DNA of 64,000 nt from Rhodosorus marinus CCMP1338 (GCA_029953675.1 JAMWBK010000004.1:1116001-1180000), one strand, 5' to 3'; shown: positions 5,797-60,190, numbered from the stretch's first letter. The notes: a model not told the origin generated them from the letters alone. Translations and numbers: made by a program.

Positions 5797-8700
5797 ATGA
5801 ATTGGTTTAATCGGAGGCTGAAACAAAAAAAAACTGAGGCTGTGGCGCGCCTCGGCGAGCATGTTGCTAGAATACGGCAGAAAGCGACATTTAGACGGCG
5901 GCGGAGCACCAGATATTCTTCAGGATGTTCGGTAAAACAGTTGCGCAGCCACTCCAAGCTTGACTTTGACAGATGTCCAAAGCTTTCCACAATGAAAGGC
6001 TGGACTTTACTAGCATAGCCTGAAGCGATGAAAGGCTGGAACCTGTGAGACCGGCCCTCTTCACGGAGAAGACTGGCCATGCTCTCAGCGTACCGTCGTT
6101 CCCTCACAAGGCGAAGTATAGAAGCTGCTGCCCCCGTGCGGGGCACCGCAGAAGGGAAATGGGTACTGCACACGGGGCAAGTAACAGCGAGGTCCAAATA
6201 TACTGAGCGTCTGGCGGCGGCCTTTGATACCAGAAGATCTTTGATGCAACGAGGAGATGTGGTTGCGGAGGGTGTACTAGGCAGTGCCGATTCCACCTCG
6301 ATCGTGTAGGCAACTCTTGTCAAGTGTTCGTTCAGGATGTATTTCAGGCGCGTGTGTCTCTTCGTACGATGACCCCGTAGCAGTTCACACGAGCGCAAAA
6401 ACGGTTGCCCACATCCGTCGATACGGCTCGCACAACCTTGGCAGAAGGCAGGGCGATTAGAATGCCAAGGGGCCGGTGGCAAACCCAGGTAGGTGCGTGC
6501 TGCAGTCCGGAACTGGAAAGCGTTCAGCGTTGGCCCCGTGACGAGGGCAGAGTGGTTAGACATAGGTGAAAGATAGATGACCTCCCATGCCCTGTAGACG
6601 AGCCGCAGTGGTAGGTGGTGTGAGTGGAGAGTTGAGCAAGATTGTGTGAGCAGCACTGTGTTGGTCCCAAGGAAGGCTATGTTGGATCACATCAGTGCGG
6701 GAGCTTCGCGATCTGCTTATTCCCGGGTAATCGGCCTCGAGTGACTGAGGACCGACTGGCGTAATCGTTGGCATCGCCACCTCTCCGCTAACTTCCGGAT
6801 GCTCTCAATCATTCCGATGGGCCGAAGACGCGGTTGCTCATGCGAATGATCGGCTTTCGCAAACAAGCAAAGCTGTGCCCGCCGTAAGTGTGCCTACGGT
6901 GTGGACGCGCGTACAGTTCCCTGCAAAAAGGCATTCAGAGTCTTCACCAATGCGCGTCGGCCCGTCTCGCTCAAAGCCTGCAATAATTCCGTGCGAAGGT
7001 CTGAAGGCCCAGGGGAACGGTCGCGGTGGGAGGTACGGAGAAGTGAGGCTATGTTGGATCACATCAGTGCGTGAGCTCCACGATCTGTTTATACCCGGTT
7101 AATCGGCCACGGGTGACTGGGGCCTGGCTCCACTATCGTCCGCCAGCACACGATTAACCGTAGATTCCACTACAGCCTCATTGCGTCCCCATAGCACTTC
7201 CTTCCAGGAAGTGAACTTAGATCGATTCTCCTCTGGCACGGCATTGCAAGGACGAAACGACTGGCGCAGGCCGTCGTAGATGCGCAGTAGCGGTCGCGGA
7301 AGGTTGACTGGGTCATCGTTCGTCAGTGCCCAAGTCAAAAGGCACGCACTGCGGAACCTAAATCCCACAAGGGAATGAAGAGCGGTGGCCCAGGAAGCCA
7401 CCGTCGCCGTCGACAAGACGTCGGTCACCCACTCCAAAGCCTCCCAGGCGCGCGCAGGGTAGAGCATCCGAGCCCGTACCAGGTCCCTATCAGGTGCCGA
7501 TGTCGAAGAAGTGGTTCGTCCAATAGTGTGCCCCAATATCGCCTCGTCCGACATAGCAGCAATCCACGCTCCCCGTTGGGGTGGAAGACTTCTCAGCCAA
7601 TAGTTGAGGAGGGACCCGCACAAAGTTGAGGAGGGACCCGCACAAAATCGAGAAATCAGGAACACCGATAGCAGCATACCATCAGGAAGGCCCTCAATGG
7701 CATATCTCAGCTGCCTTGTGCTTGGTCAAAACTCGTTCGCAGGAGGCTTGCGCGAAGCTATCACTTTCCAGCCTAATACCATGATGCATCAGACCCTCAG
7801 GTCGGCAAAGGTGCATGAGAGCGTCGGCCAGACTACCCGTAGGGCACCCAGTGAGGCCCCTACGGGGCCTCACTGGGTGGGGGAAAACAACACTTCTCCG
7901 GCACGACTGTCAACCCCACCTCACTTGCAATAGCTTGGATCCCGCCAACCCCGATCTAGATCCGAAGGGCTACCCATCAACGTCACATTATCATGATATG
8001 CACAGATTCGTAGGTCCTCCATCTCAATCGCGAGCTGCGAGGCACAGGCGTGAAGGACCGGCCCACAAGGATCCCCTTGTTGTATCCCTGTGTATGCTTC
8101 AAAAAATTTCACCCCCAGCAGGCATGTACGGGAGCACAGTAAATCCCAACTAAAAAAGGCCAAGCCTCAGGAAACACCCTTCGAACCACCTCCACTGCGT
8201 GCGTCAGGGATATTTCCGAAAAGCTGTTGAAAGCGCGCCGGAAATCAATAGCCAGGATGCCCCAGGCCGGCTTAGTGGCCCGTTCTAGCTCGATCGCATG
8301 GGTATTCGCATCCCCCAGAAAACCCCACCGCCACTTGGAGAGGAGCCAAAAAAAATTGTAACACGCTGGCCTGGTCGCTGGCGTAGCCACCTCCCCACTA
8401 ACTTCCGTATGCTCTCAATCATTCCGATGGTCCGAAGCCGAGGGTGCTCAGGCGAGTGATCGGCTTTCGCAAGCAAACAAAGCTGCGCCCGCTGTAAGTT
8501 TGCCCACGGCGTGGACGCGAGTAGAGTTCCCGGCATTCAGAATCTTCACCAATGCGCGTCGGCCCCGTCTCGCTCAGGGCCTGCAATACTCCCGTTCGAA
8601 GGCCTGAAGGCCCAGGGGACCTTCCGCGGCGGGAGGTACGGAGAAGTTCCTCCAAATCGAACTCGCGGGGCGTCGTATCTATGCGAAGGCCGGCCAACTC

Positions 8701-9410
8701 TGGTCGGTCGAGAAGGGCAGCGAAGTTGAGCTGGAGCTCCACATCAGACGACGGAAATAATGCTGATATCGGTTCCGCCAGCCGGTCATCATAGGGAAGG
8801 ACAGGCACTTGTCCCTCCAAAACCTGTGCCGCTCGACTCAAATCACCAACCTCCACCAACTTCTGCACCCGAGCCGTCATGTGCGAGGCACCCTCGGACT
8901 TGACCGTGCGTACCGAGGCCTCGAGCGACCTCATGTAAATACTTTGCATAACCTCAAGTTCCCCACGCAGGAACATTGCGAGCCGGTCCCGGACATGCCA
9001 GCTACGCGCTAATGTACGAGCGGGGCCAGGATCGAACGCGGCACGGAGGCCTCTGACAAGCCGATGTTCTGTCGAGACGAAGTCACCTGCCAGGTGATCG
9101 GTTTCTGGGAGCTCTACGTGGAAGTTGCTCCAGAACTTAGTAATCTGACCATCACCTTGATAGATAGATGCGCCCATGTTGCCGACTGCGAACGTGTGTG
9201 GTCATCAGGGGCCCGCACACGTACAGCAATCCGGAACAGATTGCAGGCGGAGCGAATTTTCATTGATTGAAACTGTGAAGTTGGGAACCACGAAAGCGAC
9301 TTGCCAGTCACGGGAGTTCATGTGGAACCCTTGTCCTGTTCGAAATACTGCTGGAATCCTCAGGTTTAGGACGGTAAACGGAGGGGGTGGTGCTAAGGCC
9401 TTGTAGAAGC
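5797..9410 (-). mobile_element. CRE-like non-LTR retrotransposon family B, degenerate composite copy (RT, thumb, CCHC knuckle, RLE) with internal duplications
   Basis: RT motifs RGRSPGPSGL, RLRTIGMIESIRKL, ILAIDFRRAFN, GIQQGDPCGP and AYHDN (catalytic DD mutated). Knuckle CQGC..DGCGQPFLRSC..RH. RLE YLDLAVTCP..FIVESFG. Block 6672-6745 repeats at 7046-7118; 6770-7045 duplicates 8385-8650. Frameshifts and stops throughout. Confidence 0.85.
6005..6027 (-). mobile_element. 23-bp family-B 3'-end stub with 13-bp TSD
   Basis: ATGAAAGGCTGGA at 5992-6004 and 6028-6040 flanks the insert, whose reverse complement is CGCTTCAGGCTATGCTAGTAAAG. The uninterrupted coding context is seen at ~9745-9780. Confidence 0.85.
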
Positions 9411-9499
9411 TTCTATAGATGTTCCACCGCCTCCGCAGAACTGCTTCCCCATCCTGTCAACGCACCGTTTTCAATCGCCTAAGCTTCCATAACTGTTGT

Positions 9500-9994
9500 T
9501 CCACTACAGACTCATTGTGTGGACATAGCATCTCCTCCTAGGAACTGAACTTAGATCGATTCTTTTCCGGCACGGCATTGCACCGACGAAACGCCTGTTG
9601 CAGGCCGTTATAGATGCGCAGTAACGGCGGCGGAAGGTTGACCTGGTCATCGTTCGTCAGCGCCCGCGGAACCTAAACTTCACCGCATGAGGGAACGACG
9701 GTACGCTCAGAGCATGGCCGGTCTTCCCCGGGAAGAGGGCCGGTCTCTCAGATTCCAGCGTTTCTTTGTGGAAACCTTTGGGCATCTGGAAAAGTCAAGC
9801 TTGGAGTGGCTACATAAGAGCTTTACCGAATATCCTGAAGAATATCTGGTGCCCCTCCGCAGTTTAAGAATCGCACTCTGGCGGTATTCTAGAAACATGC
9901 TCGCCACCGTCGCCTGGGTTTACATGCTCTCCTTCCTAGTCGCTAATTTCCTTCTACGTTTTCCGTAGCGCATCAGGCTATGTTAGTAAAACCA
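9500..9994 (+). mobile_element. Family-B copy with 5' inversion (antisense 9500-9683, sense RLE and 3' end 9684-9994)
   Basis: 9500-9683 matches 7165-7365 in the same (antisense) orientation. 9687-9968 encodes RERRY..FVETFGHLEKSSLEWL. Flanks CCATAACTGTTGT (9487-9499) and CCATCACTGTTGT (9995-10007) match at 12 of 13 bases. Confidence 0.8.
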
Positions 9995-10368
9995 CCATCA
10001 CTGTTGTGCGGCGCTCCCTTCAAAGAGCGATTCTGAAAATCAAAAAAACCCCTTACCCCTGAAAAGAGTTCCATTTTCCCGTTACCCACTAAAAACCCGC
10101 GATAGTCATTAAATGTTCATCGCCCAGCCACCAAATTCTCTACGGATGCACTGGAATCGCCTATTGCCCGCACTTACAGGCCCGCCCCGCCCTTAAACCC
10201 CCCTGTTTTCGCAGGTTTACCCACTTCTGGGTCGAAAACAGTCAAAAACCCAATGGGCCCAACCCTACTCCGAGTTGTTTTACTGTTTTGCAATAGTCTG
10301 CCCATCCGCTTGAAGAATTATCGGTACCTCCAGATAAACGTTATCCGCGGCACATGACAGCACAAGAG

Positions 10369-10998
10369 AACGAACGAATGGTTTAATCGGAGGCTGAAAG
10401 AAAAAACCCCGAGGGGAAAAAAAGACTATGTGCGGCGAAGAACTCGCGCCTCCAACATCAAAGCGGCATTCATGCGCCACAGCAGGAAACGTAAGCGGGT
10501 AAACAACGATTGAAGACGGTCAGGGCGTTCGCGGAACAACTCCCGAAGCCAGCGAGAACCAACAGAGTCCATGAACCCAAAGCACTCAATGATCAGGGGA
10601 CAAGAGAGAGGAAAACAACTCGAAAAAGGAAGAAATTTTGTACCAGACGGTGGCCTACTTCTAAATCACTTTCTACACGTTTGTCGTACATTTTGCACTG
10701 GAACCCTTTTTTTACCCGATGGTGATTGTCAATTCCAACCAGTCCGATCAAATTTTTGATGTCCTATAGAAGGCTACCAAAATGATGAACGCCGCATGGA
10801 TGACCTCTCGTGGTCACCTGTGGCGATAGCCGCCGTACGACGTACATTGATCTGTACATTGATCTAGCTGTTCCTAATCCTCAGGATAGTCACCATGTGC
10901 CGGCTGCGGGAGAGCGCCGTGGATTTGCCGCTGCCAGTATGAAACGATGCAATTAGTTGAAATATGCGGGGTCTTTGCTTCCGAACCTGGTACGCCGT
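10369..10998 (-). mobile_element. Family-A copy with inverted 5' part (3' half on minus 10369-10598; upstream half on plus ~10600-10998)
   Basis: The minus segment runs from PLIIECFG to the tail CATTCGTTCG. The plus segment carries NHFLHVC and NDERR..TTYID..KYAG. The two halves are complementary parts of one element. Confidence 0.75.
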
Positions 10999-13463
10999 CT
11001 AGGGAAGATTCTGCGTCATATCATGGGCTAGCCGCTGCTTGTCTTCGAACTGCTTCGGAATCTTCGGCATAACTAAGCCATATGCCCGTGATGGTCTCCA
11101 ACGGGTTATTTCATTGTCGAAAGTCGGCTGTGAATTGGGTTTTCTGCCGTACCTGGATTTGCGATGAGTATTTGCTCGTCGCTTTTGTAACTTACCGCTC
11201 CACAACATGTACATGTTTTCCCATACTCTTCGTACACATCTCGCTCCGAACCCTTCCCCCTTCACATGGTAATCGATATGTCTTTTATAGCCTTGTGCAA
11301 ACGTTCACATCCTAATCACCATCGTGCAAAAACGCAATAAATTTCTAATACTAGACAGCTCGCCCTCAACATCTTCCCAACGACAACGTTTTCGGTGGGC
11401 GCTACTTCTTCTGACTCAGATTACATTTAATCTTCTATTGTTCTGCTGAAATTTTCTTTTACAGGAACTTACGAAAGTGGCACAGTTGAGCCTTACAATC
11501 GGTTACCGCCAACTGGTAAGTCCTCCACGGGGACTCCTGCCGAGAATTGCTCGTCCGCGAAGGGGTACTTGGATTGGTAGACCGTTCCTAGCAGCTATTT
11601 TAGATAGCACCGCAACCCCCAAAGCGATGAAATTCATACAGCTGAGGCTCAATCTACAGGATACTTATCCCATGTTAGTGCTTGGGATCAGTCTGAATAT
11701 CGAGAATGTTTCGGATGCGTGAACGTGTTTGAACGTCCTGGTTCAAGAAATCAAAGCTTGACGACTATAATCCCACAGGAATTCCTTATCAGCCATCGAC
11801 AAGAATACATGACCTCCGCTTTTAGCAAGGATTATAAGGATCGCCTAGCGAGGCTCTCGAGAAAGTAAACCGGCTCTTTGCTTTATTTTACTTCCTCCGA
11901 AGCCGACATTGTCTGTTTACAGAATCATAGCAAGCGCTTAAGAACCGAATTCGAGCCACAGGGCACGTCCAAGTTGTGGCATATTGGGGGTGTTGAGCTC
12001 CCCTTGTCAGCCAAAAGAAGCGTATAAAAACGTCCGCCGCCGGAAAAAGAAGACACCCTCGCCCGGAACGGAATCACGTAGCGGGCACTAGCAGCAGATG
12101 TTGTAAAGTACCATCTCACCTGCTCCAGGAAAGCATATACTTGTAGTTTTGCACGCGGAGGAATATCCGGGCGGATGTTGACTAAAAAACCTAGCTGACA
12201 GGTTGTGCTTGCGGGTTTGATTTTGAATAAGTCATATTGACTGACTGAAAAAGAGATACAACAGACTGATAGTCGTGGTTCTGATTGTGTTGCGATGACC
12301 GTAACGCCGCTACATCAATATTCAGAGTCCGTTCAGTCATTTGCGGAAGCAGCAAACCTCACGGCGAGGATTCCACAAGCATATGGACTAGTTTTTTCAG
12401 CGGGCAGACTCTCTCAGTAATTCAATTAAAGCGACATCAAGGCCATTAAACTGACAAATTCATACAGAAACGTCGCAAAACTAGTTTCTTCAGCAGCTAA
12501 TATCCGGTAGTATCCCTTCAGTCCTTGCGTACAACGGCTATTCCCCACCAGCACACAGACTTCCCCGCGCTGGGAATCAAAAACTAACAAAAAACGGGAA
12601 GTAGTTGGGAGAGGCTTGTAAACCCGCAGGGCGAGGGCTCCACACACGCCCACAAAGTATTTGGTTGTTTTTTTGCAGGAATTCGTACCCCAGCCCGCAT
12701 GGCAAACCGCTTTAAGCGACGAATATGTTCCGTGTGATCCCCGAGCGGCTCTCCTCGCTGCTCACCCGTTTGAGTTTCCTGTTGTGGCATAATAACGCAG
12801 CTTTGATGTTGAAGGTGCATGGTCTTCGCCGTCACTAATCTTCCTCCAGCAGCCCCCCCAGCTTTTCTTGTTCATCCTCCGAACAATGATCTTCTTCTGC
12901 TTCTACTAAACGTGATCAGGATCCTTTCAGTCTTTGCTGAGACGGCAGGGATACCGCCGGGCGAGGACGAACCACCACCGGCACCACGCGCACGCGGGGG
13001 AGCGCCGGGGATTCAAAAAAGACAAAAAAACAAATATCTGGACCCCCTGGACATGGGGTGCAAGTGAGTTTAGAGCGAACGCGTAGTAGTGGTATTGCGC
13101 TGCGGTAGGTCGCTGCCGAATAAAGGCTACGGGGTCAAGGATGCGTAATCAGAGAATGATCAGGCAGCTAACTTCCTCATGGACATCACCTTGTGGACGT
13201 TTCTGCAGTGTAAATTTTCAAGCTGGTGACCTCTATCGTATGCCACGAAGTTCGGCTTAAGTAGAAAGTACCAACCCTTTCATCCCCCCTTCAAAAACAC
13301 TCCATAGGGATTTTTATAATATATTTCTGCACCCCAAAGAGGTCGGCTTTAGGTGGTCCAACAGGGGTACCCAGTCACTTCGTTAGTGAAACCACCAACT
13401 GGTTTCTTTCCGCTGCCTTAAAATAAATGGCTTACCTCCCCAATCACACACCCCAACGAAGCC

Positions 13464-13565
13464 GCATGAATGCCGCTTTGATGTTGGAGGCGCGAGTACT
13501 TCGCCGCGCTTAGTCTTTTTTTCCCCTCGGGGTTTTTTTTTCAGCCTCCGATTAAACCATTCGTT
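13464..13565 (+). mobile_element. ~100-bp family-A 3' stub with 10-bp TSD
   Basis: Near-identical to 36035-36135; CAACGAAGCC at 13454-13463 and 13566-13575. Confidence 0.9.
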
Positions 13566-14081
13566 CAACGAAGCCCAACCCGCTCCAGCATACACTGACG
13601 CTCAAACCCCGAACGACACTCAAATTACGCCCCATTCGATACAGTCAGTTGCTTTATTCTGGTCACTATCGTAAATTCATTTCATTCATCGTATTCACGA
13701 TAACACAAATCATTAACAAACGAAATATTTTCCCAATGTGAAAGCCTATGCGCTTTAAAACATCTATTATACGAATATAATATATCATAAAATAGTATTT
13801 ATTGAGTACACTCAAGAGTGTACACACTCTTTATTTGCAATCTATATTATCCTTATTTATTAAGCAATGGCCTGAGTCAGGTATCGCGATGCGTATTCTG
13901 AGGGGAATGTCTGTTGAATGAATTGAGGTACTGTTTAGAACGAACTGTTTAGTGTAACGAGCAGAAAGGGTTCATTGACTGAATTTGCATTTGGGTGGAG
14001 CAGTCGGAGCAGACTTGGAACTAAGAACCGAGAGATTAGCGGGATTTCATGGCATAATGAAATCTGGTGGGTAGTCTAAGA

Positions 14082-14121
14082 ACTTCCTTGCGTAGCGCTT
14101 CAGGCTATGCTAGTAAAGTCC
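14082..14121 (+). mobile_element. 40-bp family-B 3'-end stub with 9-bp TSD
   Basis: AGTCTAAGA at 14073-14081 and 14122-14130; insert ends CGTAGCGCTTCAGGCTATGCTAGTAAAGTCC. Confidence 0.85.
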
Positions 14122-14173
14122 AGTCTAAGAGCATATATATGTATTGGAGAGAACCCTAAAAGGGGTGGATTAG

Positions 14174-15742: not shown

Positions 15743-18367
15743 TCAAGTCATCACCCGGGCCTCGAGCAGCGTATTTTCTCCTGTTCCTCCATCGAGCAAG
15801 TCATTGCCAGTCCCTCCACGCAGCTCATCATCGCCACCGCCTCCGAACAGCCGATCGTCCATGCTGCCGCCCAAGACCAGGTCGTCCCCACCCGAACCTG
15901 AGATCTCGTCATCACCAGACCCGCCAGATAATACGTCATCTCCCGAGCCTCCTATGAGGAGATCATTGTCCCCTCCTCCGTCCAATACGTCGGCTTCTGA
16001 TCCCCCCTCGATTCGATCCTCACCGTCCCCTCCCCTCAGAACATCCTCGTCGGACATCCCCAGAATCACATCATTCCCTTCCCCTCCCTCAATCTCATCC
16101 TCTCCATCCCCTCCCAACAACCTATCATCACCTTCGCCTCCGTCGATCCATCCCTTTCCGTTCAAGTTTTTTATATAATCATCCCCGCCCGCGCCGTACC
16201 CACGGTCCCATGCGCCGGAGCCGAGGTTCACTTCGTCATTTCCGCGTCCCCCGAAGACGATGTCGCTGCCTCCTCCGGCGTCTACCGTATCTGATCCATT
16301 GCCAGCCCAGATCTTGTCGTTGCCATCGAGGCCGTGTATGTTGTCGTCCCCGTCAAGTCCATAGATCCAGTCAACAAACTCAGTGCCGTACAGGGTGTCG
16401 TCCCGGTCGCTGCCTACGATGCGGTTGATGCAGTTGAGGCGGAGCGGGCATATTGGCCTGGATTCAGGGGAGACCGGACAGTCCTTAGAAGGCGTGACTG
16501 TCACCGTGGACGCTCCGCGAACGATTTTGGCCTCCAATACCATGCACAGCTCTCCATCACAGCAGTTGCTCGTTGACTCGATGGAGTCGGGACATATCGT
16601 CAGGCTGAGGTTTCTCCGAGTGTTCTCCACCTTCTTCCTTGCTCTGAACTTACGATTCCCGGCCGGTATGAGGTTGCAGTCCTGGTAGATTCCCATCTTA
16701 ACCGCTCGAAAAGTTCCAGTCTGCGCACTAAACCGGACCACCACGCACTTCATGCCGGCGACCGTCCTGTTCTTTGCACAGGCGGTCGCCAAACAGCTCC
16801 CTGTCCTCGTGTTGGTGAGGTCGTAACAGATTTCTCCAAAAGAAACCAGCGACTGGGTCTCGAGCAGCTCGGACTCACAACTCGTCCTCGGCAGCAACTT
16901 CTCCCGCTCGTCAACCTCGTCGTCCCCACTGCCACCATCAACCACATCAAACCCCGTCCCGGACTCGATCCTGTCGTCCCCCAGGTCTCCATTGATGGTA
17001 TCAACGTATCGATCCGCAGTACTAATCCTATCCTCGCCCGTTCCACCATCCACGCGACTCCCACCGCCCTCGTGGGAGATGTAATCCCACCCATTCCCGC
17101 CGTACACTCGTGCATACCCCCCGGAGCTGATTAACCGGTCATTTCCATCGTCCCCGAACACAGTATCCTCCCCACCGCTGCTTAGAATCACGTCCGGTCC
17201 TCCTCCACCTTTCAACACATCGTTACCACCGCCTTCGTCACGGATCCAATCGTAGTCTGCACCGCCCTTGACGTAGTCATCGCCGGATCCAGGAAGGATC
17301 CTGTTCACCCCGTCGCCTCCCACAATCCAGTCATTCTCGCTTCCACCCACCAGGTTGTCCACACCGAATCCGCCGCCGACGAGAAAGTCATCCCCCTGCT
17401 CCCCATTCGCGCGATCGAATCCGTCGCCGGTGCTGAGGTAGTCGTCGTCCTCTCCACCTTTGAGCCAGTCGTTTCCCAGCTCGCCGTAGATCCGGTCCTC
17501 ACCCTCCTGTCCGTCTATGTAGTCATCTCCGAGCCCTCCGAAGATCTGATCGTCTCCTTCATTACCAGTGGCATGATCTGACCCCCGTCCTAGGAAAACC
17601 AGGTCATCACCGCCGCCTGCAAAGACGCTGTCGCTGCCGTCGCCGCCAACAAGTCGATCGTTTCCGTCAAAGCCACGAAGCATATCATCACCACCGAGGC
17701 CATAGATGAAGTCGACGTATTTCGTACCGTCAAGCCTGTCGTTGCCGTCGGTACCAAAAATGTAGTTGACGCAGTTGTAGGCTATGGGACACGTTGGTCC
17801 GTCGTACCTGCCAGGAACTAGTCGCCTTCGGCAGGGTTTGGCATCAGGTCGAAGCGTTGGGCCGCGGTTCGCCGTCTTCGCTTCGGCGATCAGGCACTGA
17901 TCGCCGTCACAGCAATTAGTTTGAGTCCTGATTATGTCGTTGCAGTAGGTTAGAGACGCGGACCTGGGCTTCCAGGGCAAGTTTTTGCTTCGGTTGAACG
18001 GATCCCCCGTTTCACCCTCCAGCTTCAGGTCTTCACAGTCGTGGTACACGCCGAGGTAGATCCGGGAGAGCCTAAGCGATTCAAACGCAGTGAAGGTTGC
18101 TCTGATGCAGATTTTCCTGTCAATCTTCTCAGTCCTCGTGCAAAGCTCACCGGAGACGACGTCATCTCCTCCCATGAGCTTAAAGCACGTCTCTTCAAAG
18201 GAAACCGCTTCCTGACTACCCAACATCGTCTCCAAACAGTTGGAAAGGGCATCCACGGAATTAAAAACATATATTCCCATACCAAAAGTGACTACAAGCG
18301 TCCAGAAAACATCTCTCCTTACCTTCATCCTGCCCATCCTTCCCTCCTTCACCCCTGCAAACCTCAA
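15743..18367 (-). CDS. Secreted protein with two units of 8-Cys domain plus hemolysin-type (RTX) GGxGxD calcium-binding repeats
   Basis: 874-aa ORF. Hydrophobic segment VFWTLVVTFGMGIYVF. Many G.DG.D/GG.G.D nonapeptides in two blocks, each preceded by a Cys-rich domain and CP...NC[VI]N.I.G.D. Confidence 0.9.
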   Translation of the reverse strand: MRFAGVKEGRMGRMKVRRDVFWTLVVTFGMGIYVFNSVDALSNCLETMLGSQEAVSFEETCFKLMGGDDVVSGELCTRTEKIDRKICIRATFTAFESLRLSRIYLGVYHDCEDLKLEGETGDPFNRSKNLPWKPRSASLTYCNDIIRTQTNCCDGDQCLIAEAKTANRGPTLRPDAKPCRRRLVPGRYDGPTCPIAYNCVNYIFGTDGNDRLDGTKYVDFIYGLGGDDMLRGFDGNDRLVGGDGSDSVFAGGGDDLVFLGRGSDHATGNEGDDQIFGGLGDDYIDGQEGEDRIYGELGNDWLKGGEDDDYLSTGDGFDRANGEQGDDFLVGGGFGVDNLVGGSENDWIVGGDGVNRILPGSGDDYVKGGADYDWIRDEGGGNDVLKGGGGPDVILSSGGEDTVFGDDGNDRLISSGGYARVYGGNGWDYISHEGGGSRVDGGTGEDRISTADRYVDTINGDLGDDRIESGTGFDVVDGGSGDDEVDEREKLLPRTSCESELLETQSLVSFGEICYDLTNTRTGSCLATACAKNRTVAGMKCVVVRFSAQTGTFRAVKMGIYQDCNLIPAGNRKFRARKKVENTRRNLSLTICPDSIESTSNCCDGELCMVLEAKIVRGASTVTVTPSKDCPVSPESRPICPLRLNCINRIVGSDRDDTLYGTEFVDWIYGLDGDDNIHGLDGNDKIWAGNGSDTVDAGGGSDIVFGGRGNDEVNLGSGAWDRGYGAGGDDYIKNLNGKGWIDGGEGDDRLLGGDGEDEIEGGEGNDVILGMSDEDVLRGGDGEDRIEGGSEADVLDGGGDNDLLIGGSGDDVLSGGSGDDEISGSGGDDLVLGGSMDDRLFGGGGDDELRGGTGNDLLDGGTGENTLLEARVMT

Positions 18368-18561
18368 GCCCCGCCCCGGCTACCAGAGGCCCCCGAAATA
18401 CTCAAAAAGATCACTTCCAAACTCAATAATATGACACATACCTAAGGAGTTCAACTACCATCTAGTCCCAATACATAACACACTTTTCCCATCCCTCCCC
18501 CCCCCTCTCCGCCTCTCCTCCGAAAGCCTCCTCACCACCACCTCCTGGAAGTCCTTTGATA

Positions 18562-18657
18562 CGAACGAATGGTTTAATCGGAGGCTGAAAAAAGAAACCC
18601 CGAGGGGAAAAAAGACTAAGCGCGGCGAAGTACTCGCGCCTCAAACATCAAAGCGGC
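18562..18657 (-). mobile_element. ~96-bp family-A 3' stub with 5-bp TSD
   Basis: Near-identical to the family-A 3' end; TGATA at 18557-18561 and 18658-18662. Confidence 0.85.
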
Positions 18658-29582: not shown

Positions 29583-29827
29583 AACGCCCTGACCATCTAC
29601 TTCTCGTTTGTCTACCCGTCTATGCTTCCTGAGGTGGCAGATGAACGCTGCTTTGATGTCGGGAATTGTTCCGCGGACGCCCTGACCGTCCGTCCTCGTT
29701 GTTTACCCGTTTTAAGTTTCTTGCTGCGGCGTATGAACGCTGAGTTGATGTTGGAGGCGGGCGTAGTCTATTTCTCCACTCGCCTTTTTTTTTTTTTTTC
29801 CGGTCTCCGATGAAACAAATTCATTCA
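29583..29827 (+). mobile_element. Family-A 3' region (older fragment 29583-29659 joined to a younger copy) ending in a TTCATTCA tail
   Basis: Matches 40130-40330; tail CCGATGAAACAAATTCATTCA. Confidence 0.8.
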
Positions 29828-39100: not shown

Positions 39101-40330
39101 TCGCCGGATTACCGGTTATCATCTGTAGACCTTGTAATGCTTTAATCGAGTCTCTCGACTAGCCATTATGCATGTGGTGCGCGAGGTCTTCCGGGTAGCT
39201 TTTCCCTTTTTTAGCAGTCTTTACTCTTTGATGGGTCAAGAGCCAACTTATGACACCCCCCCTCGGCCCTTCCTCGCACTCCTTCGAGGCGCGGACCGGG
39301 GTTCAACAGGGTGACCCGTTGGCGCCTTTTTTGCACGCCTGTAGGCTTCAAGTCGTTTGCTTGGCCTGCGTTCAGAGGTCCCAGAGGTCCGCGCAGTGGG
39401 TTGCCACGATGACTCTGCCTCATTGGACCTCCAGGTACCCTCGCGGAGGCGTACGATCGTCTCCGCACACTGGCATCCCTCGTCGATCTCGAAATCAATC
39501 ATGCGAAGTTGTTCTACTCGGGAGGAGCGGATATTCAAGAGCATCAGGTCCCTGCGCGTTTCCAGTATATTTGGCGTAGGGGAGGTTTTGTTCATCTGGG
39601 CATCCCATATGGGTCCGCGTCTCTTGTGGAGGTTGAGTTGTCGCAGATTCTGAGTAAGCACCGGCAGTTGGTCTCGGAGCTCCGCCGGCTGCCTCGCGGC
39701 TTCTTGAAAGCCGCGGGGCAGCTCGTTGTGCTCGTTGTTGCTAATAGTTCCGCTCGCTCCCGACTCGCTGGGGCAACCCTTGCCAACAACGAAAGCTTTC
39801 GTGAGCTGGGATTCTTCTTAGATGAGGAGTTGGGTCATCTTCCGCGCCCCACCCGTGATATGGTTCGTGCCCTGTGACGATAGCCGCCGTACTACGTACG
39901 TTGATCTTGCTGTTCCTAATCCTCAGGCTGGTCGCTGTTTGCCGGCTGCGGGAGAGCGCCGTGGATTTGCTGCTGCCAATATTAGACATCGCAAAGAGTT
40001 GAAATATTCCGGGTCCTTATCTTCCCCAAGCATTCGTGCTTCGGCTCCAGCTCATCGCCTGGTACCTCTGGTCATTGAGTGCTTTTGTTTTATGGATTCC
40101 GTTGATTCTGGTTGGCTTCGGGAATTGTTCCGCGAACGCCCTGGCCGTCCGTCCTCGTTGTTTAGCCGTTTAAGTTTCTTGCTGTGGCGTATGAACGCTG
40201 CTTTGATGTTGGAGGCGCGCGGCCTTCGCCGCGCTTAGTCTTTTTTTTCCCCTCGGTTTTTTTTTTTCTGTTTTTTTTTTCTGTTTTTTTTCTTTTCAGC
40301 CTCCGATTGAACCAGTTCATTCATTCATTC
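36141..40330 (+). mobile_element. Near full-length, inactive CRE-clade non-LTR retrotransposon, family A
   Basis: G/T-rich 5' region, a 246-bp tandem duplication, and RT motifs RRSPGPSGL, LRPIGMVEVVRKL, QLGVGYRGGCEFAIH, GVQQGDPLAP and CHDD. A 41-bp duplication at 38253-38334 shifts the frame. An internal deletion near 39870 joins the RT region to the RLE. Tail (TTCA)n at 40316-40330. Confidence 0.88.
36495..36987 (+). repeat. Two tandem copies of a ~246-bp unit in the 5' part of the element
   Basis: TGGCCGGTGCTGCCGTATCT starts at 36495 and 36741; the units are nearly identical, with one extra C in unit 2. Confidence 0.95.
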
Positions 40331-40675
40331 AGTAAAAGCATCGTAGACAGTGTCTCTGGAAACTGACAACGTTGACTGAATACGCAATCGTTATTCTTTA
40401 TTTGATTGATCAAAAGAAAAGCCAGCTCGGTCAGAGAGAGAGCAGCTGAGCGAGGCGCTGAGTTGAGGGGGTGTTTGTCCTAAGCATTAGAGCTGATTTC
40501 AGCTTAACGGGTATCTGATTGTGCTAGAATAACAATCAGTATGCAACCCTTGGAATCTGCATCCACCCCGAAGACAGGGATGGTAGACGGGTCCCATCGC
40601 CACCGCGATGATGGTGATGCATCAGTCCCAAGGGGTGCTCGCATGTGGAGGGGTACCACATACAAAAATACGAGC

Positions 40676-41012
40676 AGAAAAAAGCGTAAAAGTGTAAAAA
40701 AGAGTAAAAAAGTGTGAAAAAGTGTGAAAAAGTGTGAAAAAGTGTGAAAAAGTGTGGAAAAGTGTAGAAAGTGTTAAAAGCGTAAAAGTGGAAAAAGTGT
40801 AAAAAAAGTGGAAAAAGTGGAAAAAGGAGAAAGTGGTAAAAAGTTGTAAAAAGTTGTAAAAAGTGGTAAAAAGTGGAAAAAGTGGAAAAAGTGGAAAAAG
40901 TGTAAAAAGTGTGAAAAGTGTAAAAAGTGTAAAAAGTGTAAAAAGTGTAAAAAGTGTGAAAAGTGTGAAAAGTGTGAAAAGTGTGAAAAGCGGGTAAAAG
41001 TGTAAAAAGTGT
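40676..41012 (+). repeat. Strand-asymmetric minisatellite of ~9-bp units (AAAAAGTGT, AAAAGTGTG, AAAAAGTGG)
   Basis: About 35 degenerate units with almost no C on the plus strand. ORFs across it are low-complexity artefacts. Confidence 0.95.
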
Positions 41013-41022
41013 TTCACGTCCA

Positions 41023-41062
41023 CACAAAATTTGAGTCCCCGGGGGGGGACTCAAATTTTGTG
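41023..41062. repeat. Perfect palindrome with 18-bp arms and a GGGG spacer
   Basis: CACAAAATTTGAGTCCCC-GGGG-GGGGACTCAAATTTTGTG. Confidence 0.95.
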
Positions 41063-41390
41063 CGGCCATTGATCAGCCCAATCCAGCGTGTCGAAAATGG
41101 GTCCTCCTCTATATGTCTCTCCACGAAAGGAGGAGGAGTAGGTACAAAGCTGAAGTATGGCCAAGTTCATGGCACCGGAGGGTGTAATTTTTTTGACCAG
41201 GTTACGTTTTTACTGTAAACAAGCCTATTTTAGGGGGTATAACGCACAACATGCTCTCACGCGAAGTAGCGTATAGGGACTCTAGTATAACTGTTGAGCG
41301 TACTAGCATAACCACCATTGGATACGCGATCCACGCTGTACCCACTCCCGCCACAGGTACTCCCGTGAGGAAGGAGATCTGCGGTCTGCC

Positions 41391-42275: not shown

Positions 42276-42361
42276 TGTGCCTTGCGTACCATCCACTTGG
42301 TTTTCACCCGCACTGACCAAGTCTCCTATCGAACTCCACTAGCTCTGCCGCTGTTCGCGTC

Positions 42362-44200: not shown

Positions 44201-45032
44201 TTGTGTTAGATTCGTTCTTTATAACCGTAGAGAAGAGCCCAGACTGAACTGTTCAAGAAAGGGGCGAGAACCCTCAACCCTGTCGTGACGAGAAAACCTC
44301 CAAACCGAAAGTTATAGTGGCTAGGGAACGAAAAAGGGTGTCAACCTGCTACGTCCGTTCCACAACCAGAACATGCTTGACACGTAATTCAGTTAATAGA
44401 TTTTCAGTGGAGCTTGAGTGTAAGTCAAAATAGGGAGAGTCCCATTTCGAGGGGATAGACCTTGATCATGCTGAAGCGCTCCAGATATTCAAAAAAACTC
44501 TGTCCTTGTCTTTTTACCCCGACGACACTGGAGGGCGAGCTTTGATGAATCCACGAGAAAAACGTGAATGATTTCAACAACTCTCAAATTGAAAATGGAT
44601 TCGTTCAAGTCCCTGGAGAGGGAGTTGCGTCCACTCCCTGCTCTTATCCTCATTAGTTGCGGTCGCTGAGGAGAAAATTATTCGAGACAGTAGTGGTCGC
44701 AAATGAATTCCTCAACCTTTTGGGTAGGGGTTTTCTGCAATGCTTTGTGTTCGTAAAGCCGGCTAACGTTGAGGGAAAAACTAGATGATGATAATCATTG
44801 ATAAGGCACCGAGCCAAAAACTCCGTCCACCTTGCTCCTTGACAATTGGCCGCCCCAGGGACACACAGGAACAGGGAAGCGGTGCCGGTTCCCTGGAATG
44901 AATTGGAACAGCTTTAGGAGAAGAAATTAATTGGATCTTCCGCTTCCAACAAGGACTTTGTCGAGATACGTTCATCGCCGAATAAAAGCCTTTCACTGTA
45001 ACATCCTTTTGAGATTTTTCAATGCTTTTCAT

Positions 45033-45065
45033 GAATATACTCAGGCTATGCTATTAAAGCCCAGC
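45033..45065 (+). mobile_element. Older family-B 3'-end stub with 8-bp TSD
   Basis: CTTTTCAT at 45025-45032 and 45066-45073 flanks ..TCAGGCTATGCTATTAAAGCCCAG. Confidence 0.65.
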
Positions 45066-47699
45066 CTTTTCATCAATGAGAGAGAGTTCAACATGTTGTC
45101 TGATGAGTCGCTGCCACGCCAATTGGATGGAAAGAGGTACGGAGAGCCTAGAGAGCTACTTTGCGCAACTCAATTGGATGGAAAATGGATAACAGGAGTT
45201 TGAGGTCATGGACCAGTCGGCAAGGGACTGCCGTGTGAATCTTAGTTTTATGCTGACATAATCTCGTCCTGGACACACTGCTTCTCGTCCAATGGACCCA
45301 AAACCAACCAGGGGAGTCGATAGAGGTGTATCTGAATCGAGAGGTGGCCCAGAAGCAGCGTGGGCAGCGTTGAATAACAGCTGGAAACAACTTGAAGTTT
45401 TCTTTTGGTTTTCATGGAAGGAATTTTGTCGTCGATCACCGGCTAAAGAATCCCGGATCATCATCATCATCAGCTGGAAGGGATATCTGAGAAAGAAACT
45501 GCAAGGGTTAATCTTATTGAGGGCGTGGAGAGGCCTCAAGGTCTCAATACTATGCGAATTTGATTGGGCGTACAATGACTAGTTTCACAACTTGAGAGAA
45601 CGAGCTTCGACCGTTACTTTTCCTATCAAGAAGGGAACGAGCCCATGCTTAATCCTTATCTCAAACTCTATGAGTATCCTCAAAGCAACCTGAAAAACAA
45701 CCAGGAAAAGAATGTACTCGTATATTTGGCGAGCAAGACAAAGCCTTTCCTTGTCGCCAAGGAGAACAGAGGGGAGAGTCCCACCTTGGTCTTGGATTCG
45801 ATTTCCATTATTGAATCCTGTTCCGTTTGTTGATTGTTGAATTCATCATGTCCGGACAACTCGAGCGTCGATTGGTAAGATTCAGATCAAGAAGCAACCC
45901 TTATTTTCGAACTGTGAAAACAACAGTCTATTACATAACTTGGTCGTCCACCACGACTAATCTCCTCCAAAAAATTACATTTCCAGCCCCAATGACTATC
46001 CGCCAAACTCCCTTTTCTCAACCTGCATGCTCGCTTGACGCCACGCGCAAGTGTTGCCAAATGATGATAACCAAAAGAGGATTCCAAACACTGCCAACAT
46101 CATTCCGTTCAGTCCACTCCGAACTCATCCTACCATTTCTATTGGATACGATGGCAATTTCATATCGAATATTATCCAATGTACATACGCAGTTGCTACT
46201 AGTCTAGTCAACAACTCAACTCTTCCAGTCAATTTGTGTCAGCTCTGTTCATCTCCGATTAAAAAAAAAAATGACTGATATTTTGATTGGGACGGAGATG
46301 CGGGAGCGTGGACTTCATAGGAACCTCCAAGCTGATGGCAGTATCTGAAGATGCTGATTCGAAGAAGATATGCCATCCAATGGTCCTGTTCGAACCAGCT
46401 TCCGCATAACCTACTTGTTCAATCGGATACGATGATAAAGTCCAGTGCTAAGATTCTAAAAGCATTTTGGAGCGGGAGCTTTGGTTGTTGACCAGGGTAC
46501 CCAACGATCCTTTATGTAACTTGGGTCCCTTGGGGAGCTGAAGAGAACCAACGGATTCGTTGCGACTCCCTATATTGCGAGTACTTCAAGAATACCACTG
46601 TCGGAGTATTCCGACGAGCAGACGCCGCACACTGGATGCCTTCACTCGGCCTGGACAAGCACCTCGTCAACCCACCAACAATCTTTCCAAAACCCTTGAA
46701 TTTATCCTCGTCAAATAGATATCCAGCTCATCTATCGCTTCTCCCCTCACCCTCTACTAGCCTTCTACTACAAGGCCTTCTACTACCCCAACTCGAACTC
46801 CGCATAACATTTCTGCGGAGTTCGAGTTGGGCTACACATTACGATGAGAGATTTTCATCGTCATCACCACCCAAAAATTATTCGACAGCTGTCCATCTCA
46901 AGAAACTCCTAAAATACAAATCTAATTTTCAAAATCATTTTAGAAATATGTTGTGTACAATTGGACATGATTTTGACTGATGTTCTAAATTGCCCAATGT
47001 TCGTACGAGAACTGTGGAATCTCCAATCAATACACAGAATTCTCAATCAATTGCAATCAGTTCAGCCAGTGAGCAGCTCGAACAATGAAGATTGATATTT
47101 TGGTTCGAACAGATGGGGTCTCACGTGGGGTCCCACGTGGACTTTGCCGGGAAGCCGACCAGTCAATTTCAACCTGATTCAGTCAGTTCGCGTCAGATAC
47201 GTCGAGCAATTTTTTCTCAAGGCGATAGTGACTGATATCTTGATTGGTATAGCGTTGGGGAAGGTGAGGGGGGCGGGCTGAATGCAAGCGTCCTCTTAAG
47301 AAAGTAGATAGAGAAATCCTGTGCACCGTGCATGCCGATGTGTTGATCTTTGCAGAATTCGATGTCCCGTTCTGTAGTCCACTCCACGGTTGGTTATGAA
47401 CCGACAACGGGGTGAGGGCCACGGTGAAGAGCTGAAAGCGTTGTTCAAGAACGCGGGGCCTGACGCGATGTTCGGCTTGTATCTGCGTCTGATCCGGTGG
47501 CTGGAGCCCTGAGAAAGAGTTGCTGCTTTGGAATTGGCTAGGTAATCTCAGGTCTCCAACGGGAAAACTTTGCAATTAACACGCAAACTGGAAGAAAACG
47601 AGCGGACTTTCAGGAACAGCGCCGCGCTGCTCGACCAGAGCAAACAGCTGCGTTGTGACTCTGAACTTGTAAAACTACGGTCCTACGGAAGGAATCAAC

Positions 47700-52754: not shown

Positions 52755-53166
52755 AAATGAGATAGCCGCAGTACGACGTACTTTGATCTTGCTGTTCCTC
52801 ATCCTCAGGCCAGTGGTTCTTTGCCGGCTGTGGGAGAGCGCCGAGGATTTGCCTCTGCCAGTATGAGACGTTGCAAGGAGTTCAAATACGCGGGGGCTTT
52901 GCCTTCCCCAGGCATTCGTGCTTGGGCTCTAGCTCATCGCCTGGTACCTCTGGTCAATGAATGCTTTGGGTTTATGGATTCCGTTGGTTCTCGTTGGCTT
53001 CCGCGAACGCCCTGACCGTCTGTCCTCGTTGTTTACCCGTTTAAGTTTCTTGCTGTGGCGTATGAATACTACTTTGATGTTGGAGGAGCGCGATCTTCGC
53101 CGCGCATTGTCTTTCTTCGAGCTTCGAGGTTTCTTTCCGTATCTCTCCGATTAAACCAATTCATCC
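52755..53166 (+). mobile_element. Family-A 5'-truncated copy
   Basis: Homologous to 35720-36140; tail CCGATTAAACCAATTCATCCA. Confidence 0.85.
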
Positions 53167-53178
53167 ATTACGACGACT

Positions 53179-53262
53179 GACGAATGGTTTAATCGGAGGC
53201 TGAAAGAAAAAACTCCGAGGGGTAAAAAGACTAAGTGCGGCGAAGAACTCGCGCCTCCAACG
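53179..53262 (-). mobile_element. ~84-bp family-A 3' stub, tail-to-tail with the previous copy
   Basis: Reverse complement of the young-subfamily 3' end; the tails are about 12 bp apart. Confidence 0.85.
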
Positions 53263-57560: not shown

Positions 57561-57889
57561 CATCTCCACTGAAAGACATCAAGCCAGGGTTTTAGTCCCC
57601 CTAAGGCTCCCTTCACAAGACAAACGAAAATGCTTACTAAATTTTTTGTTAGCTTTTTACGCACTGTAGCGAAATTTTGGTGTGCATTTTTTTCTGGAAT
57701 GAATGGTTTAATGGCGCATTCGTTGAGCATCCGGTAAATTCTGGATTTAGATTGGTGAAAATATATCACAAAATGGATGTTGGGATTTGTTGGGCTTTAC
57801 TAGGATTTGTTTGCATCGATCGAAGTGAAAATGGGAGACAGAGTATATCTACCACACGCCGGCTAATCTAGTGGAAGAGCTATGTATGA

Positions 57890-58360
57890 AGGGCAAACCG
57901 GTCTTGAAGTTGAATGTGAGAAGTCCTTGCCTGTGGTGGACTAGTAGAGTGAAGGGATCCGTGTTCCCGACCTCGTTGTCACCTGTGAAGATAGCCAACG
58001 AACTACGTACGTTGACCTCGCTGTTCTCAATCCCCAGGCTATCCGTTATCTGCTGGTTGCGATGGAGCGCTGTGGATCTGCAGATGCAACTATGCGACGG
58101 CACAAGGAAGGGAAATACGCCGGGACTTTGTCTTCCCTGGAATTCGAGCTTCAGCCTTAGGTCATCGCCTGGTAATCTTGTTAGTTGAGTGTTTCGGATT
58201 TATGGACTCCGTTGGTTCCAGCTGGATTCGCGAATTGTTCCACGAGCGCCGCGACCGGCTTTCCTTGTTGTTAACCCGTTTGAGTTTCCGGGGTTGTGGC
58301 CGTATGAACGCTGCTTTAATGGTGGAGGCGCGTGATCTTCGCCTTCAGCAGTCTTTTTTT
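57890..58360 (+). mobile_element. Family-A RLE fragment showing the canonical RxPD motif
   Basis: GLEVECEK..RVPDLVVTCEDSQRTTYVDLAVLNPQ..KEGKY. Confidence 0.75.
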
Positions 58361-58630
58361 CCAGGCTCCGAATAAGCACATTGATTCAAACCACCCCCCC
58401 ACGCCTCATCTACAAACACAAACAATGCCCTCAGTGCAAACGCTTCAGGGTACCTAGCAAATCCATCGAATTCATTCAGTCTAGCGAAGTTTTGGGTGGA
58501 ACGGCGTATTGTTTGACCATCCCGCAAAATCTGGATTTAGTTCGTCGATTCAGATCTCAAAATGGATGCCGAGAGTCATTTTTCTCAGCAAGCGTTTACA
58601 ATCGAATCGATTTCAAGCCGTATAAAGGCT

Positions 58631-58646
58631 ATGCTAGTAAAGTCCA
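58631..58646 (+). mobile_element. 16-bp family-B 3'-end stub with 11-bp TSD
   Basis: GTATAAAGGCT at 58620-58630 and 58647-58657 flanks ATGCTAGTAAAGTCCA. Confidence 0.8.
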
Positions 58647-59948
58647 GTATAAAGGCTTGTTAGAGTTGCTGATGGATTTGACGTCCCTGTACATGTCCCA
58701 GAATCGTGTTGACGGGAACAATGAACGTGCAGACCCTGGATGAAAACGTGTTGAAGCGATAATTATACGCATAGACTCTGAGGTGACTGAGGAGAGCTGG
58801 AGGAAACGATGTGATACCTGCATGTAAGCCAAACTCGTTGGCGTGCTAGTGAGGGATACTCCAAGACAAGGAACAAGACAGAACAAGCAAAAGGGCAAAT
58901 ACCTGAATTTTGTTAACAGGTTATGAGCATAGCCTGCGATTAAAAACAAATTCGAAGCAAGGCACTAGGAGGGTGGACTAGGTCACATGCTTTTTGAGAT
59001 ATGCCAAACTGACGGGACCCGAGAGACGACATTTACTGCAGAGCACTACTGTTAGACTAAAGCTGACAGGCCTGCACCAGCAGTCTGTTGGGAGGACAAT
59101 AACGAAGGAAAAAGGGTTCAACCCGTGTCCCTCCTCAACCTAAACCTAGCAGCAGAAGCTATGCTAGTTACCGGACAGACTATAGATGCTAAAGACCTGA
59201 TGAACAAACTGGAAAAGAAACACGTTGCAAAAAAGATAGCAGCACAAATTGAGAGGTAAGTGAAGATGCTGACGAGAGAGCTGAAACCAGACGAGACAAC
59301 GCTCGGGCTCCTGACGTGCTTGAAGAATATTACTCCGAAATACTCAAGCTCGACACTACAGAGTATAAGCCCATGGAGAGATTGGGTCGCATATGACTGA
59401 TCCTGAAGGACGAAGGAAATTTGCCGAGATCATTGAAGGGTTGAAGAATATCTCCAAGGATCAGCTATGCCCGGAACCATCTATTTCAGCTTTCTCTTCA
59501 GTAGTTTCACTTACCTCTCGATCTGTGTGCTATCGTTTTGTAACATATTTATTTTCCAGTTTGTTCATCAGTTTTTTAGCATCTGTAGTCTGTTCAGCAA
59601 ACAGCGTAGCTTCCGCCTCTAAGATTAGTTTGATAAGCGACGCCGCTTGAACTCCTTTCTCTTCGTTCTCTTCCTTCCCAAAGCCTGCTTCGTGAAGGTC
59701 CGCCAGTTTTTGTCTTTCAGTAATGCTGGCTCTCCGGTACTTGTAGTCGTCGGGTCCCGTCAGCTTGAACCATCTCAGGAAACATGTGACCTAATCCATA
59801 CTCTTTGCTTTGTTTTCATCATCAGCAAATTCTGGATTTAGATTTTGTTTTATATCACAAAATGTATATTGGGAGTCTTTTCATACATCGACATGAAAAC
59901 AGGGTACAGAGCCTGTCTACCATATGAAGAGAATCTAGTGCAAGCGCT

Positions 59949-59989
59949 TCACGCCTTACGTAGCGCTTCAGGCTATGCTAGTAAAGTCC
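59949..59989 (+). mobile_element. 41-bp family-B 3'-end stub with 12-bp TSD
   Basis: AGTGCAAGCGCT at 59937-59948 and 59990-60001. Confidence 0.85.
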
Positions 59990-60190
59990 AGTGCAAGCGC
60001 TACGTAGGGCGTAAAAAGGAACTAGGAACTAGGGAAAAGCGTGCAACCCCGGGCGGCGCGGTGGCGCGAACTCAGTGAGTATGCTGCTAGAATATCGCCA
60101 GCGAGCGAAGCTTTAACTGCCTAGGAGTCTGAGACATTCAACAAGATGGTCAGTAAAAACGTTTCCGCACTCAGCTGGGTCAAGCACCTA
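59990..60190 (-). mobile_element. Family-B RLE and 3' fragment
   Basis: GCTAGAATATCGCCAG and AAGCGCTACGTAGGGC match the family-B C-terminus and 3' UTR. Confidence 0.65.

Follow-up and report, generated by a model that had tools for sequence, protein, structure and literature searches.

The DNA stretch analyzed in this work (hereafter the window, 64,000 nucleotides) is Rhodosorus marinus nuclear DNA and belongs to contig JAMWBK010000004.1 (GCA_029953675.1). The corresponding assembly reaches 31 Mb, with 13 large contigs and 15% repeats (PMC10250338). The window has a GC content of ~50% and contains few long open reading frames (ORFs), several bacterial-type domains and numerous dispersed repeats; an Rfam search of the window gave no match and no rRNA. 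Our analysis identified in it six ultra-short insertions of 11-41 nt (hereafter stubs), flanked by target-site duplications (TSDs) of 8-13 bp (Table 1). They correspond to the last 11-45 nt of a retrotransposon devoid of long terminal repeats (non-LTR), autonomous and R2-like, whose RNA ends in (GTCCA)n. Our literature search found no paper linking Rhodosorus with retrotransposons.

A search of the window with the 18-mer GCTATGCTAGTAAAGTCC, allowing up to three mismatches, gave five matches (four of them exact), compared to 0.03 expected from shuffled sequences. A script seeking the longest direct repeat that brackets each of these copies returned coordinates and lengths identical to those given for five inserts in a preliminary description of the window (stubs 1 to 5). 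The flanking repeats also stood the comparison with chance on which this description depended: when the same procedure was applied to 200,000 random positions, the probability of a repeat was 0.023 per site for at least 8 bp and 0.0046 for at least 13 bp, and the product of the site-specific probabilities of the five stubs is ~4e-11. A relaxed search using the last 14 nt of the tail revealed the sixth stub, whose structure is AACAAATCC-TAGTAAAGCCC-AACAAATCC. Furthermore, when ~160 kb of R. marinus DNA were scanned for CTAGTAAAG with up to one mismatch and a following TSD of 7 bp or more, 11 matches were obtained, compared to a mean of 2.6 and a maximum of six for 40 shuffled-suffix controls; the clean ones are the six stubs of the window. 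The six insertions and their TSDs are therefore confirmed as real. Elsewhere in the sampled DNA, region L011 carries at 17261-17282(+) the sequence GCTATGCTAGCAAAACCACCAG, devoid of upstream element sequence and of recognisable TSD; it was not counted as a stub and is possibly an old decayed one.

Table 1. Stubs, longer copies of the two retrotransposon families and other features of the window (positions counted from its first nucleotide)
Feature	Position (strand)	Insert or length	TSD	18-mer match	3' overlap with tail	Remarks
Stub 1	5992-6040 (-)	6005-6027, 23 nt, CGCTTCAGGCTATGCTAGTAAAG	13 bp, TCCAGCCTTTCAT, 6028-6040 and 5992-6004	6002-6019 (-)	5 nt (TCCAG)	
Stub 2	14073-14130 (+)	14082-14121, 40 nt	9 bp, AGTCTAAGA, 14073-14081 and 14122-14130	14104-14121 (+)	4 nt (AGTC)	4 filler bases (ACTT) and 36 nt of 3'UTR
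Stub 3	45025-45073 (+)	45033-45065, 33 nt	8 bp, CTTTTCAT, 45025-45032 and 45066-45073	45045-45062 (+), 2 mismatches	1 nt	Older; ~7 filler bases (GAATATA) and ~26 nt of tail; CCTCAGG loop variant as in L014
Stub 4	58620-58657 (+)	58631-58646, 16 nt	11 bp, GTATAAAGGCT, 58620-58630 and 58647-58657	58628-58645 (+)	2 nt (GT)	
Stub 5	59937-60001 (+)	59949-59989, 41 nt	12 bp, AGTGCAAGCGCT, 59937-59948 and 59990-60001	59972-59989 (+)	3 nt (AGT)	Nearly complete 3'UTR; antisense within the 3'UTR of the older copy 59997-60169 (-)
Stub 6	57783-57811 (-)	57792-57802, 11 nt, TAGTAAAGCCC	9 bp, AACAAATCC, 57803-57811 and 57783-57791		1 nt	Newly found
Older 5'-truncated copy	9678-9997 (+)	~320 nt				End of nuclease-like ORF, stop codon 9966-9968, 3'UTR ending GTTAGTAAAACCACCATCA
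Older 5'-truncated copy	60621-61040 (-)	~410 nt				3'UTR ending CAAGTAAAAAACCACCACC; 7-bp tandem repeat in the ORF end
Older copy	59997-60169 (-)	~190 nt				3'UTR is the target of stub 5
Long degraded copy	5843-8337 (-)					L014 positions 1-2075, in pieces 7043-8337 and 5843-6745; hosts stub 1
Nuclease-like ORF	5775-6656 (-)					Hosts stub 1
Family A copy	5386-5837 (-)					
Family A stub	5794-5837 (-)	44 nt				
Family A copy	10368-10599 (-)					
Family A copy	13463-13566 (+)					
Family A copy	18561-18657 (-)					
Family A copy	29659-29828 (+)					
Family A copy	35682-36142 (+)					
Family A copy	39871-40323 (+)					
Family A copy	52761-53158 (+)					
Family A copy	53180-53261 (-)					
Family A copy	57969-58362 (+)					
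ORF	1460-4768 (+)					Long, intron-free; GSDH, Big_5 and NPCBM
ORF	15743-18367 (-)					Long, intron-free; 11 RTX calcium-binding repeats
Tandem paralogue	25764-27893 (-)					Porphyranase beta-sandwich and BPA_C
Tandem paralogue	31008-33068 (-)					Porphyranase beta-sandwich and BPA_C
ORF	40536-41069 (-)					Contains the 9-bp array
Tandem array	40679-41012					36 copies of a 9-bp unit (AAAAAGTGT)
Amino-acid transporter gene	61109-62518 (-)					

In many copies, the sequence found in the stubs lies behind, and is contiguous with, the stop codon of a nuclear ORF encoding a reverse transcriptase (RT). In the homologous genomic and transcript loci, this ORF ends with LGLHASLPSS before its stop codon and a shared motif lies 30-48 nt beyond the stop; the consensus of the 3' untranslated region (3'UTR, ~48 nt) is TTCCTTTTCACGCCTTGCGTAGCGCTTCAGGCTATGCTAGTAAAGTCCAG. 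The preliminary description had pointed to a related end behind the stop codon of copies that it assigned to a family B; these ends, 9949-9997(+) and 60621-60671(-), indeed align with the stubs across the whole 3'UTR and are diverged members of the stub family. In L002 (contig 13), the Pfam domain RVT_1 is found upstream in the same copies that carry the tail. The solved proteins closest to the RT of the element are LINE-1 ORF2p and R2; the homology search done with this RT gave no named clade of LINEs (long interspersed nuclear elements) among its matches, so that classification by names failed.

An intact copy was found by a scan of a prokaryote genome collection, in the 2400-bp contig JBCBSJ010000274.1 (hereafter L014). 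This contig shows 79-87% identity to the R. marinus copies and 99% identity over 113 nt to an R. marinus-type transcript contig, and its ORF runs without interruption over at least 701 aa. The contig is cut at its 5' end and covers the family downstream of the N-terminus. Its RT domain matches RVT_1 at 4.8e-12, and R2 proteins are its only matches among PDB sequences (2e-9). The ORF successively includes the RT, the motif ALPLRLGGFGV, the knuckle FCQGC..H..C, the motifs ADLLV, VDLAI, KERRY and FQPLIVESFGH and the stop codon; it is followed by a 48-nt 3'UTR that contains the exact 18-mer, then GTCCAGTCCAGTCC, and that ends with AAAGTCCAGTCCAGTCC, i.e., (GTCCA)n. Because L014 associates an intact ORF with the exact 18-mer tail, the stubs originate from the 3' terminus of an autonomous non-LTR element. 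In GTDB, this contig has been binned with the representative genome 'Cyanobacteria bacterium J06638_20', a metagenome-assembled genome in which it is almost certainly a eukaryotic contamination coming from a Rhodosorus-like alga. The two other matches of the scan were chance matches in bacterial genes. A metagenome scan gave no match to the exact 18-mer and four matches to a 21-mer (loop and tail), all of them chance similarities with unrelated bacterial genes. Two other candidate master copies were rejected, L009 since it is a contig of another organism with 78% GC and L010 since it encodes an RT of a different family.

The C-terminal part of the ORF is a nuclease-like domain in which the FCQGC..H..C, ADLLV, VDLAI, KERRY and E motifs are conserved. 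A homology search with this domain from the ORF hosting stub 1 returned only four proteins, all Rhodosorus-type, and Pfam includes no family corresponding to it. In the sister family A (described below), the RT begins ~95 aa into the ORF, and the homology of two long copies ends at ~2.6 kb; judging from this ORF, there is probably little room for an N-terminal apurinic/apyrimidinic (AP) endonuclease. The 3'UTR includes a 7-bp hairpin (GCGUAGC/GCUAUGC), followed by the terminal AAAGTCCA(GTCCA)n. With a minimum free energy of -11.3 kcal/mol (z = -1.29) and conservation in 87% of cells, this hairpin is a plausible feature of the element. The LINE-type RT, the shared 3' end associated with variable 5' truncation, the TSDs of variable length and the empty sites of stub 1 (see below) are those of a LINE. 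Overall, this element is a new, uncharacterised LINE family that has an R2-like architecture but lacks rDNA specificity.

The origin of the stubs in an RT-encoding element also bears on explanations that do without retroelements, i.e., nuclear mitochondrial DNA segments (NUMTs) derived from minicircles, DNA-transposon footprints or chance. Although minicircle NUMTs are abundant in this species (PMC10250338), the stub sequence is contiguous with the stop codon of a nuclear RT-encoding ORF in many copies. Footprints of DNA transposons or of miniature inverted-repeat transposable elements would show terminal inverted repeats and a fixed TSD length, whereas the stubs have no such repeats and their TSDs vary from 8 to 13 bp; the excess of 18-mer matches over expectation leaves little to chance. 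Such explanations can hardly be given any credence.

Stub 1 provides direct evidence of insertion. Together with its TSD, it represents 36 bp and adds 12 residues in frame (IASGYASKVQPF) between RFQPF and IVESFGH of the nuclease-like ORF. The preliminary description had called for empty sites, and the insert is absent from nine relatives (eight in the alignment A1 and the intact ORF of L014) that are paralogous or orthologous empty sites of this one stub. The antisense landing of stub 5 in an older copy has generated at 59950-60008 an inverted repeat with ~18-bp arms (ACGCCTTACGTAGCGCTT / AAGCGCTACGTAGGGCGT) and a 26-nt loop, which is an insertion by-product and no designed hairpin.

All the stubs share the exact 3' end of the element and a single orientation relative to the TSD. 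The bases at the start of the upstream TSD copy, which derive from the target, were counted as 3' overlap as long as they continue the L014 tail ...AAAG(TCCAG)(TCCAG)... The total overlap of the stubs has a probability of ~1.2e-6 under a null of one in four per base. This supports the priming by 1-5 nt of complementarity that the preliminary description had suggested. It had also noticed that the duplicated flanks open with AG, G or TCCAG, which holds except for stub 3, whose TSD opens with C after an element-derived AGC. The overlap of the target with the (GTCCA)n tail explains both these openings and the constant presence of a pyrimidine after CCAG. At the 5' junctions, stub 4 shows a microhomology of 4 nt (GGCT) and two further stubs one of 1 nt each (T and C), whereas stub 1 has no overlap and stubs 2 and 3 have fillers.

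Taken as a whole, the stubs are very probably completed events of target-primed reverse transcription (TPRT) of the R. marinus element, stopped after ~11-45 nt of cDNA. Their co-linearity with the 3'UTR of the RT-encoding element and their common 3' end and varied 5' ends bear out their earlier description as completed retrotransposon 3'-end integrations. We infer the nicking agent, the order of events and the reason for the early stop. The endonuclease would nick the bottom strand, and 1-5 nt of the (GTCCA)n end of the RNA would pair with the DNA 3' end thus released. Synthesis of the cDNA would then begin and end early, within or just past the 3'UTR. The short cDNA would join the upstream target end through microhomology (GGCT, T or C) or after filler (ACTT or GAATATA), and cleavage of the top strand 8-13 bp downstream would generate the TSD.

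Enzymes of the R2 RT type add untemplated bases when they reach the end of their template. The untemplated 5' fillers of two of the six stubs could thus indicate that the RT copied up to the 5' end of 3'-terminal RNA fragments, the RNA having been degraded from 5' to 3' or cleaved down to a protein-protected 3'UTR, before jumping to the target DNA. In addition, the six stubs and a copy of ~57 nt in L002 all stop either inside the 48-nt 3'UTR or immediately upstream of it. However, the 5' ends are spread evenly over positions ~8 to 38 of the 3'UTR rather than stacked at one protected boundary, and three stubs show microhomology without filler, which makes such template decay rather unlikely. 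Filler and microhomology of this kind likewise characterise the 5' junctions produced by end joining (PMC2912911), as would be expected if stray cDNA or RNA fragments had been captured, independently of any endonuclease, at random double-strand breaks. Nevertheless, TSDs of 8-13 bp in all six stubs need staggered nicks, the exact 3' end of the element is common to all of them in a single orientation relative to the TSD, and the extent to which their 3' junctions overlap the (GTCCA)n tail greatly exceeds chance. Capture at breaks is therefore extremely improbable.

The length of copies was surveyed in the window and in a further 96.6 kb from R. marinus (L002, L011, L012, L013 and the part of L001 that extends past the window). 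Measured against L014, the 16 copies with an intact 3' end have 11, 22, 25, 28, 38, 45, 57, 70, 110, 196, 323, 352, 410, 455, 531 and at least 2165 nt. The 5' ends of the six stubs lie at six different positions of the 3'UTR (~38, 31-34, 27, 23, 13 and 8): one immediately 3' of the hairpin, three inside it (3' arm, loop and top of the 5' arm) and two upstream of it, at 4 and 8 nt. There is no gap in the length series between stubs and ordinary truncated copies. The absence of a common 5' end and of a length gap argues against a discrete small RNA template. The preliminary description had left the choice between abortive TPRT and a tiny separately expressed RNA, for which a sharp peak under 50 bp was to speak: abortive TPRT fits the data and the separate template does not, the lengths in ~160 kb being continuous, with an excess below 60 nt but without any sharp peak below 50 nt sharing a 5' end.

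A non-autonomous micro-element, i.e., an RNA 40-50 nt long that consists of the 3'UTR hairpin and the repeat tail, is transcribed separately and is mobilised in trans like a minimal short interspersed nuclear element (SINE), would account for the three copies of 38-57 nt, a length close to that of the full 3'UTR, and for the presence of four identical stubs when ~160 kb of R. marinus DNA contains no long copy with the exact tail. However, a SINE or another discrete micro-element has a defined 5' end and a unit length, whereas each stub has its own 5' end, the lengths grade into copies of 70, 110, 196 nt and more that include ORF sequence, and the hairpin by which such an RNA would have to be recognised is missing from the shorter stubs. 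Moreover, no promoter-like unit is present and L014 provides an autonomous, intact copy that has the exact tail. This explanation is thus very unlikely.

The lengths also inform on the course of synthesis in the abortive TPRT that we favour. A constant stop rate, fitted to the 7/16 copies ending by 57 nt, predicts that 7% of the others exceed 320 nt, whereas 6/9 do so (P = 8e-6). The rejection of a constant rate indicates that synthesis is abort-prone at its start and processive later. The sister family A is a more abundant LINE, with ~38% protein identity in the nuclease-like domain and an unrelated tail consisting of TTTCAGCCTCCGATTAAACCA followed by (TTCR)n, i.e., (TTCG/TTCA)n. Its copies range from ~35 to more than 2500 nt and 2/21 of them, including the 44-nt stub, are shorter than 60 nt, compared to 7/16 in the stub family (P = 0.024, in a small and repeat-enriched sample). 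Two family A tails face each other at 53141-53202.

Four of the stubs are identical in sequence and are therefore young; all of them lie in a single 54-kb part of the window. The 96.6 kb of R. marinus DNA outside the window contain no stub of this exact type (Poisson P ~0.002), and the window may be a local stub hotspot or lie near a source copy; another possibility is that young copies, when long, are scarce or counter-selected. A more radical proposal is that the active subfamily makes almost only stubs, TPRT being routinely cut off at initiation, or that the 3'UTR alone is a minimal template mobilised in trans. We consider it doubtful and improbable. If such a regime did exist, its cause would be a host restriction factor, template decay or a crippled RT, and it would leave a dense trail of scars of 10-45 nt with TSDs, invisible to ordinary repeat annotation.

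Longer and older copies of the stub family display related features. The long degraded copy hosting stub 1 has had its own 3' end replaced by family A insertions. A 108-nt copy has the TSD GTTTAAG, and a copy of ~70 nt located inside the tail of another copy has a 14-bp TSD (AGTAAATCCATCCA), so that TSDs range overall from 7 to 14 bp in stubs and longer copies. Truncated copies directly follow the tail of another one, head to tail, in L002 (20480-20580(+)) and L004 (1004-1211), and the terminal unit CTAGTAAAACC is reiterated three to four times at 13150-13240(-) of L002. These reiterated units and head-to-tail copies both point to an RT that slips, re-primes or jumps between templates.

Several points weigh against our interpretation. 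At the DNA level, an early stop of the RT would look the same as the complete copying of an RNA degraded at its 5' end. The sampled DNA represents ~160 kb of 31 Mb and is enriched for repeat-rich regions. The only long copy with the exact tail, L014, comes from a foreign-binned contig of another sample. The empty sites come from relatives, none of them allelic, NCBI holding one assembly of the species. The C-terminal domain looks like a restriction-like endonuclease (RLE), motifs and domain order being the sole basis of this likeness: a profile search of this domain against PDB sequences gave only spurious bL20m matches, and its AlphaFold model, from a 9-row alignment, has a mean predicted local distance difference test score (pLDDT) of 41 and is unusable, its alpha-beta-beta-beta-alpha-beta order being compatible with an RLE but no evidence for it. 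Lastly, the support for the hairpin is weak, its covariation being no better than in shuffled alignments and not significant.

Besides these elements, the window carries genes with bacterial-type domains, from which a cyanobacterial small dispersed repeat had initially been suspected; this reading was dropped, the window being R. marinus nuclear DNA. The ORFs encoding the GSDH, Big_5 and NPCBM domain set and the RTX repeats, located here on a nuclear contig of a red alga, may have been acquired horizontally long ago. The two tandem paralogues with porphyranase and BPA_C domains share 81% nucleotide identity across 2 kb and have three further paralogues elsewhere in the genome (L011, L012 and L013); in L013, the porphyranase-like paralogue adjoins a GSDH/Big_5/NPCBM paralogue. 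The window also includes an amino-acid transporter gene and a tandem array located within an ORF (Table 1).

This work suggests that a LINE integration with merely 11 nt of cDNA can still finish cleanly, including the cleavage of the second strand, the joining and the formation of a normal TSD; its finishing steps would therefore need neither a long cDNA nor the 3'UTR hairpin. The overlap of 1-5 nt with the (GTCCA)n end of the RNA constitutes a natural record of the alignment between primer and template. Furthermore, this study adds an undescribed and possibly active R2-like LINE family, not site-specific, in an early-branching red alga, whose genome and similar ones may hold many retroelement scars below 50 nt that are missed by repeat maskers, some of them in frame within ORFs. 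The phenomenon is not conceptually new, since 5' truncation, junction microhomology and priming by tail repeats are established LINE behaviours: the stubs are the extreme of a known 5' truncation and an ordinary outcome of LINE copying.

Among known systems, R2 and the other RLE elements (R4, NeSL, CRE, Utopia and HERO) share with the stub family a single ORF that carries, behind the RT, a Cys/His knuckle and then a nuclease-like domain at the C-terminus, the absence of poly(A), frequent 5' truncation, head-to-tail tandems and filler at 5' junctions, and R2 proteins are the only solved structures matched by the intact ORF of L014. The target-site change of R2 is a deletion or a duplication of a few bp, whereas the TSDs of the stub family have 7-14 bp. 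R2 has its insertion site in 28S rDNA, and repeats are the targets of most RLE clades (PMC4640811). In contrast, the six stubs lie in unrelated, non-rDNA targets, which places the family outside the R2 clade proper, and its RLE fold is inferred from motifs and position.

The 'stringent' LINEs, such as UnaL2 from eel and ZfL2 from zebrafish, of (TGTAA)n type, or CR1, with its 8-nt repeat, have a 3' stem-loop and a tail of short tandem repeats, and encode an AP endonuclease. Like them, the stub family has a short 3'UTR in which a hairpin precedes repeats of a 5-nt unit, (GTCCA)n, shows reiteration or slippage of this terminal unit and includes a majority of severely 5'-truncated copies. Unlike them, it combines a weakly supported hairpin with stubs that integrated without any hairpin, the AP endonuclease being theirs. 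The 5'-truncated L1 insertions likewise share their 3' end and differ at the 5' end, are flanked by TSDs and show microhomology or extra nucleotides at the 5' junction (PMC2912911). However, L1 uses poly(A) for its priming at a T-rich nick and is typically truncated at hundreds to thousands of nt, whereas 7 of the 16 3'-intact copies of the stub family do not exceed 57 nt and the shortest has only 11 nt.

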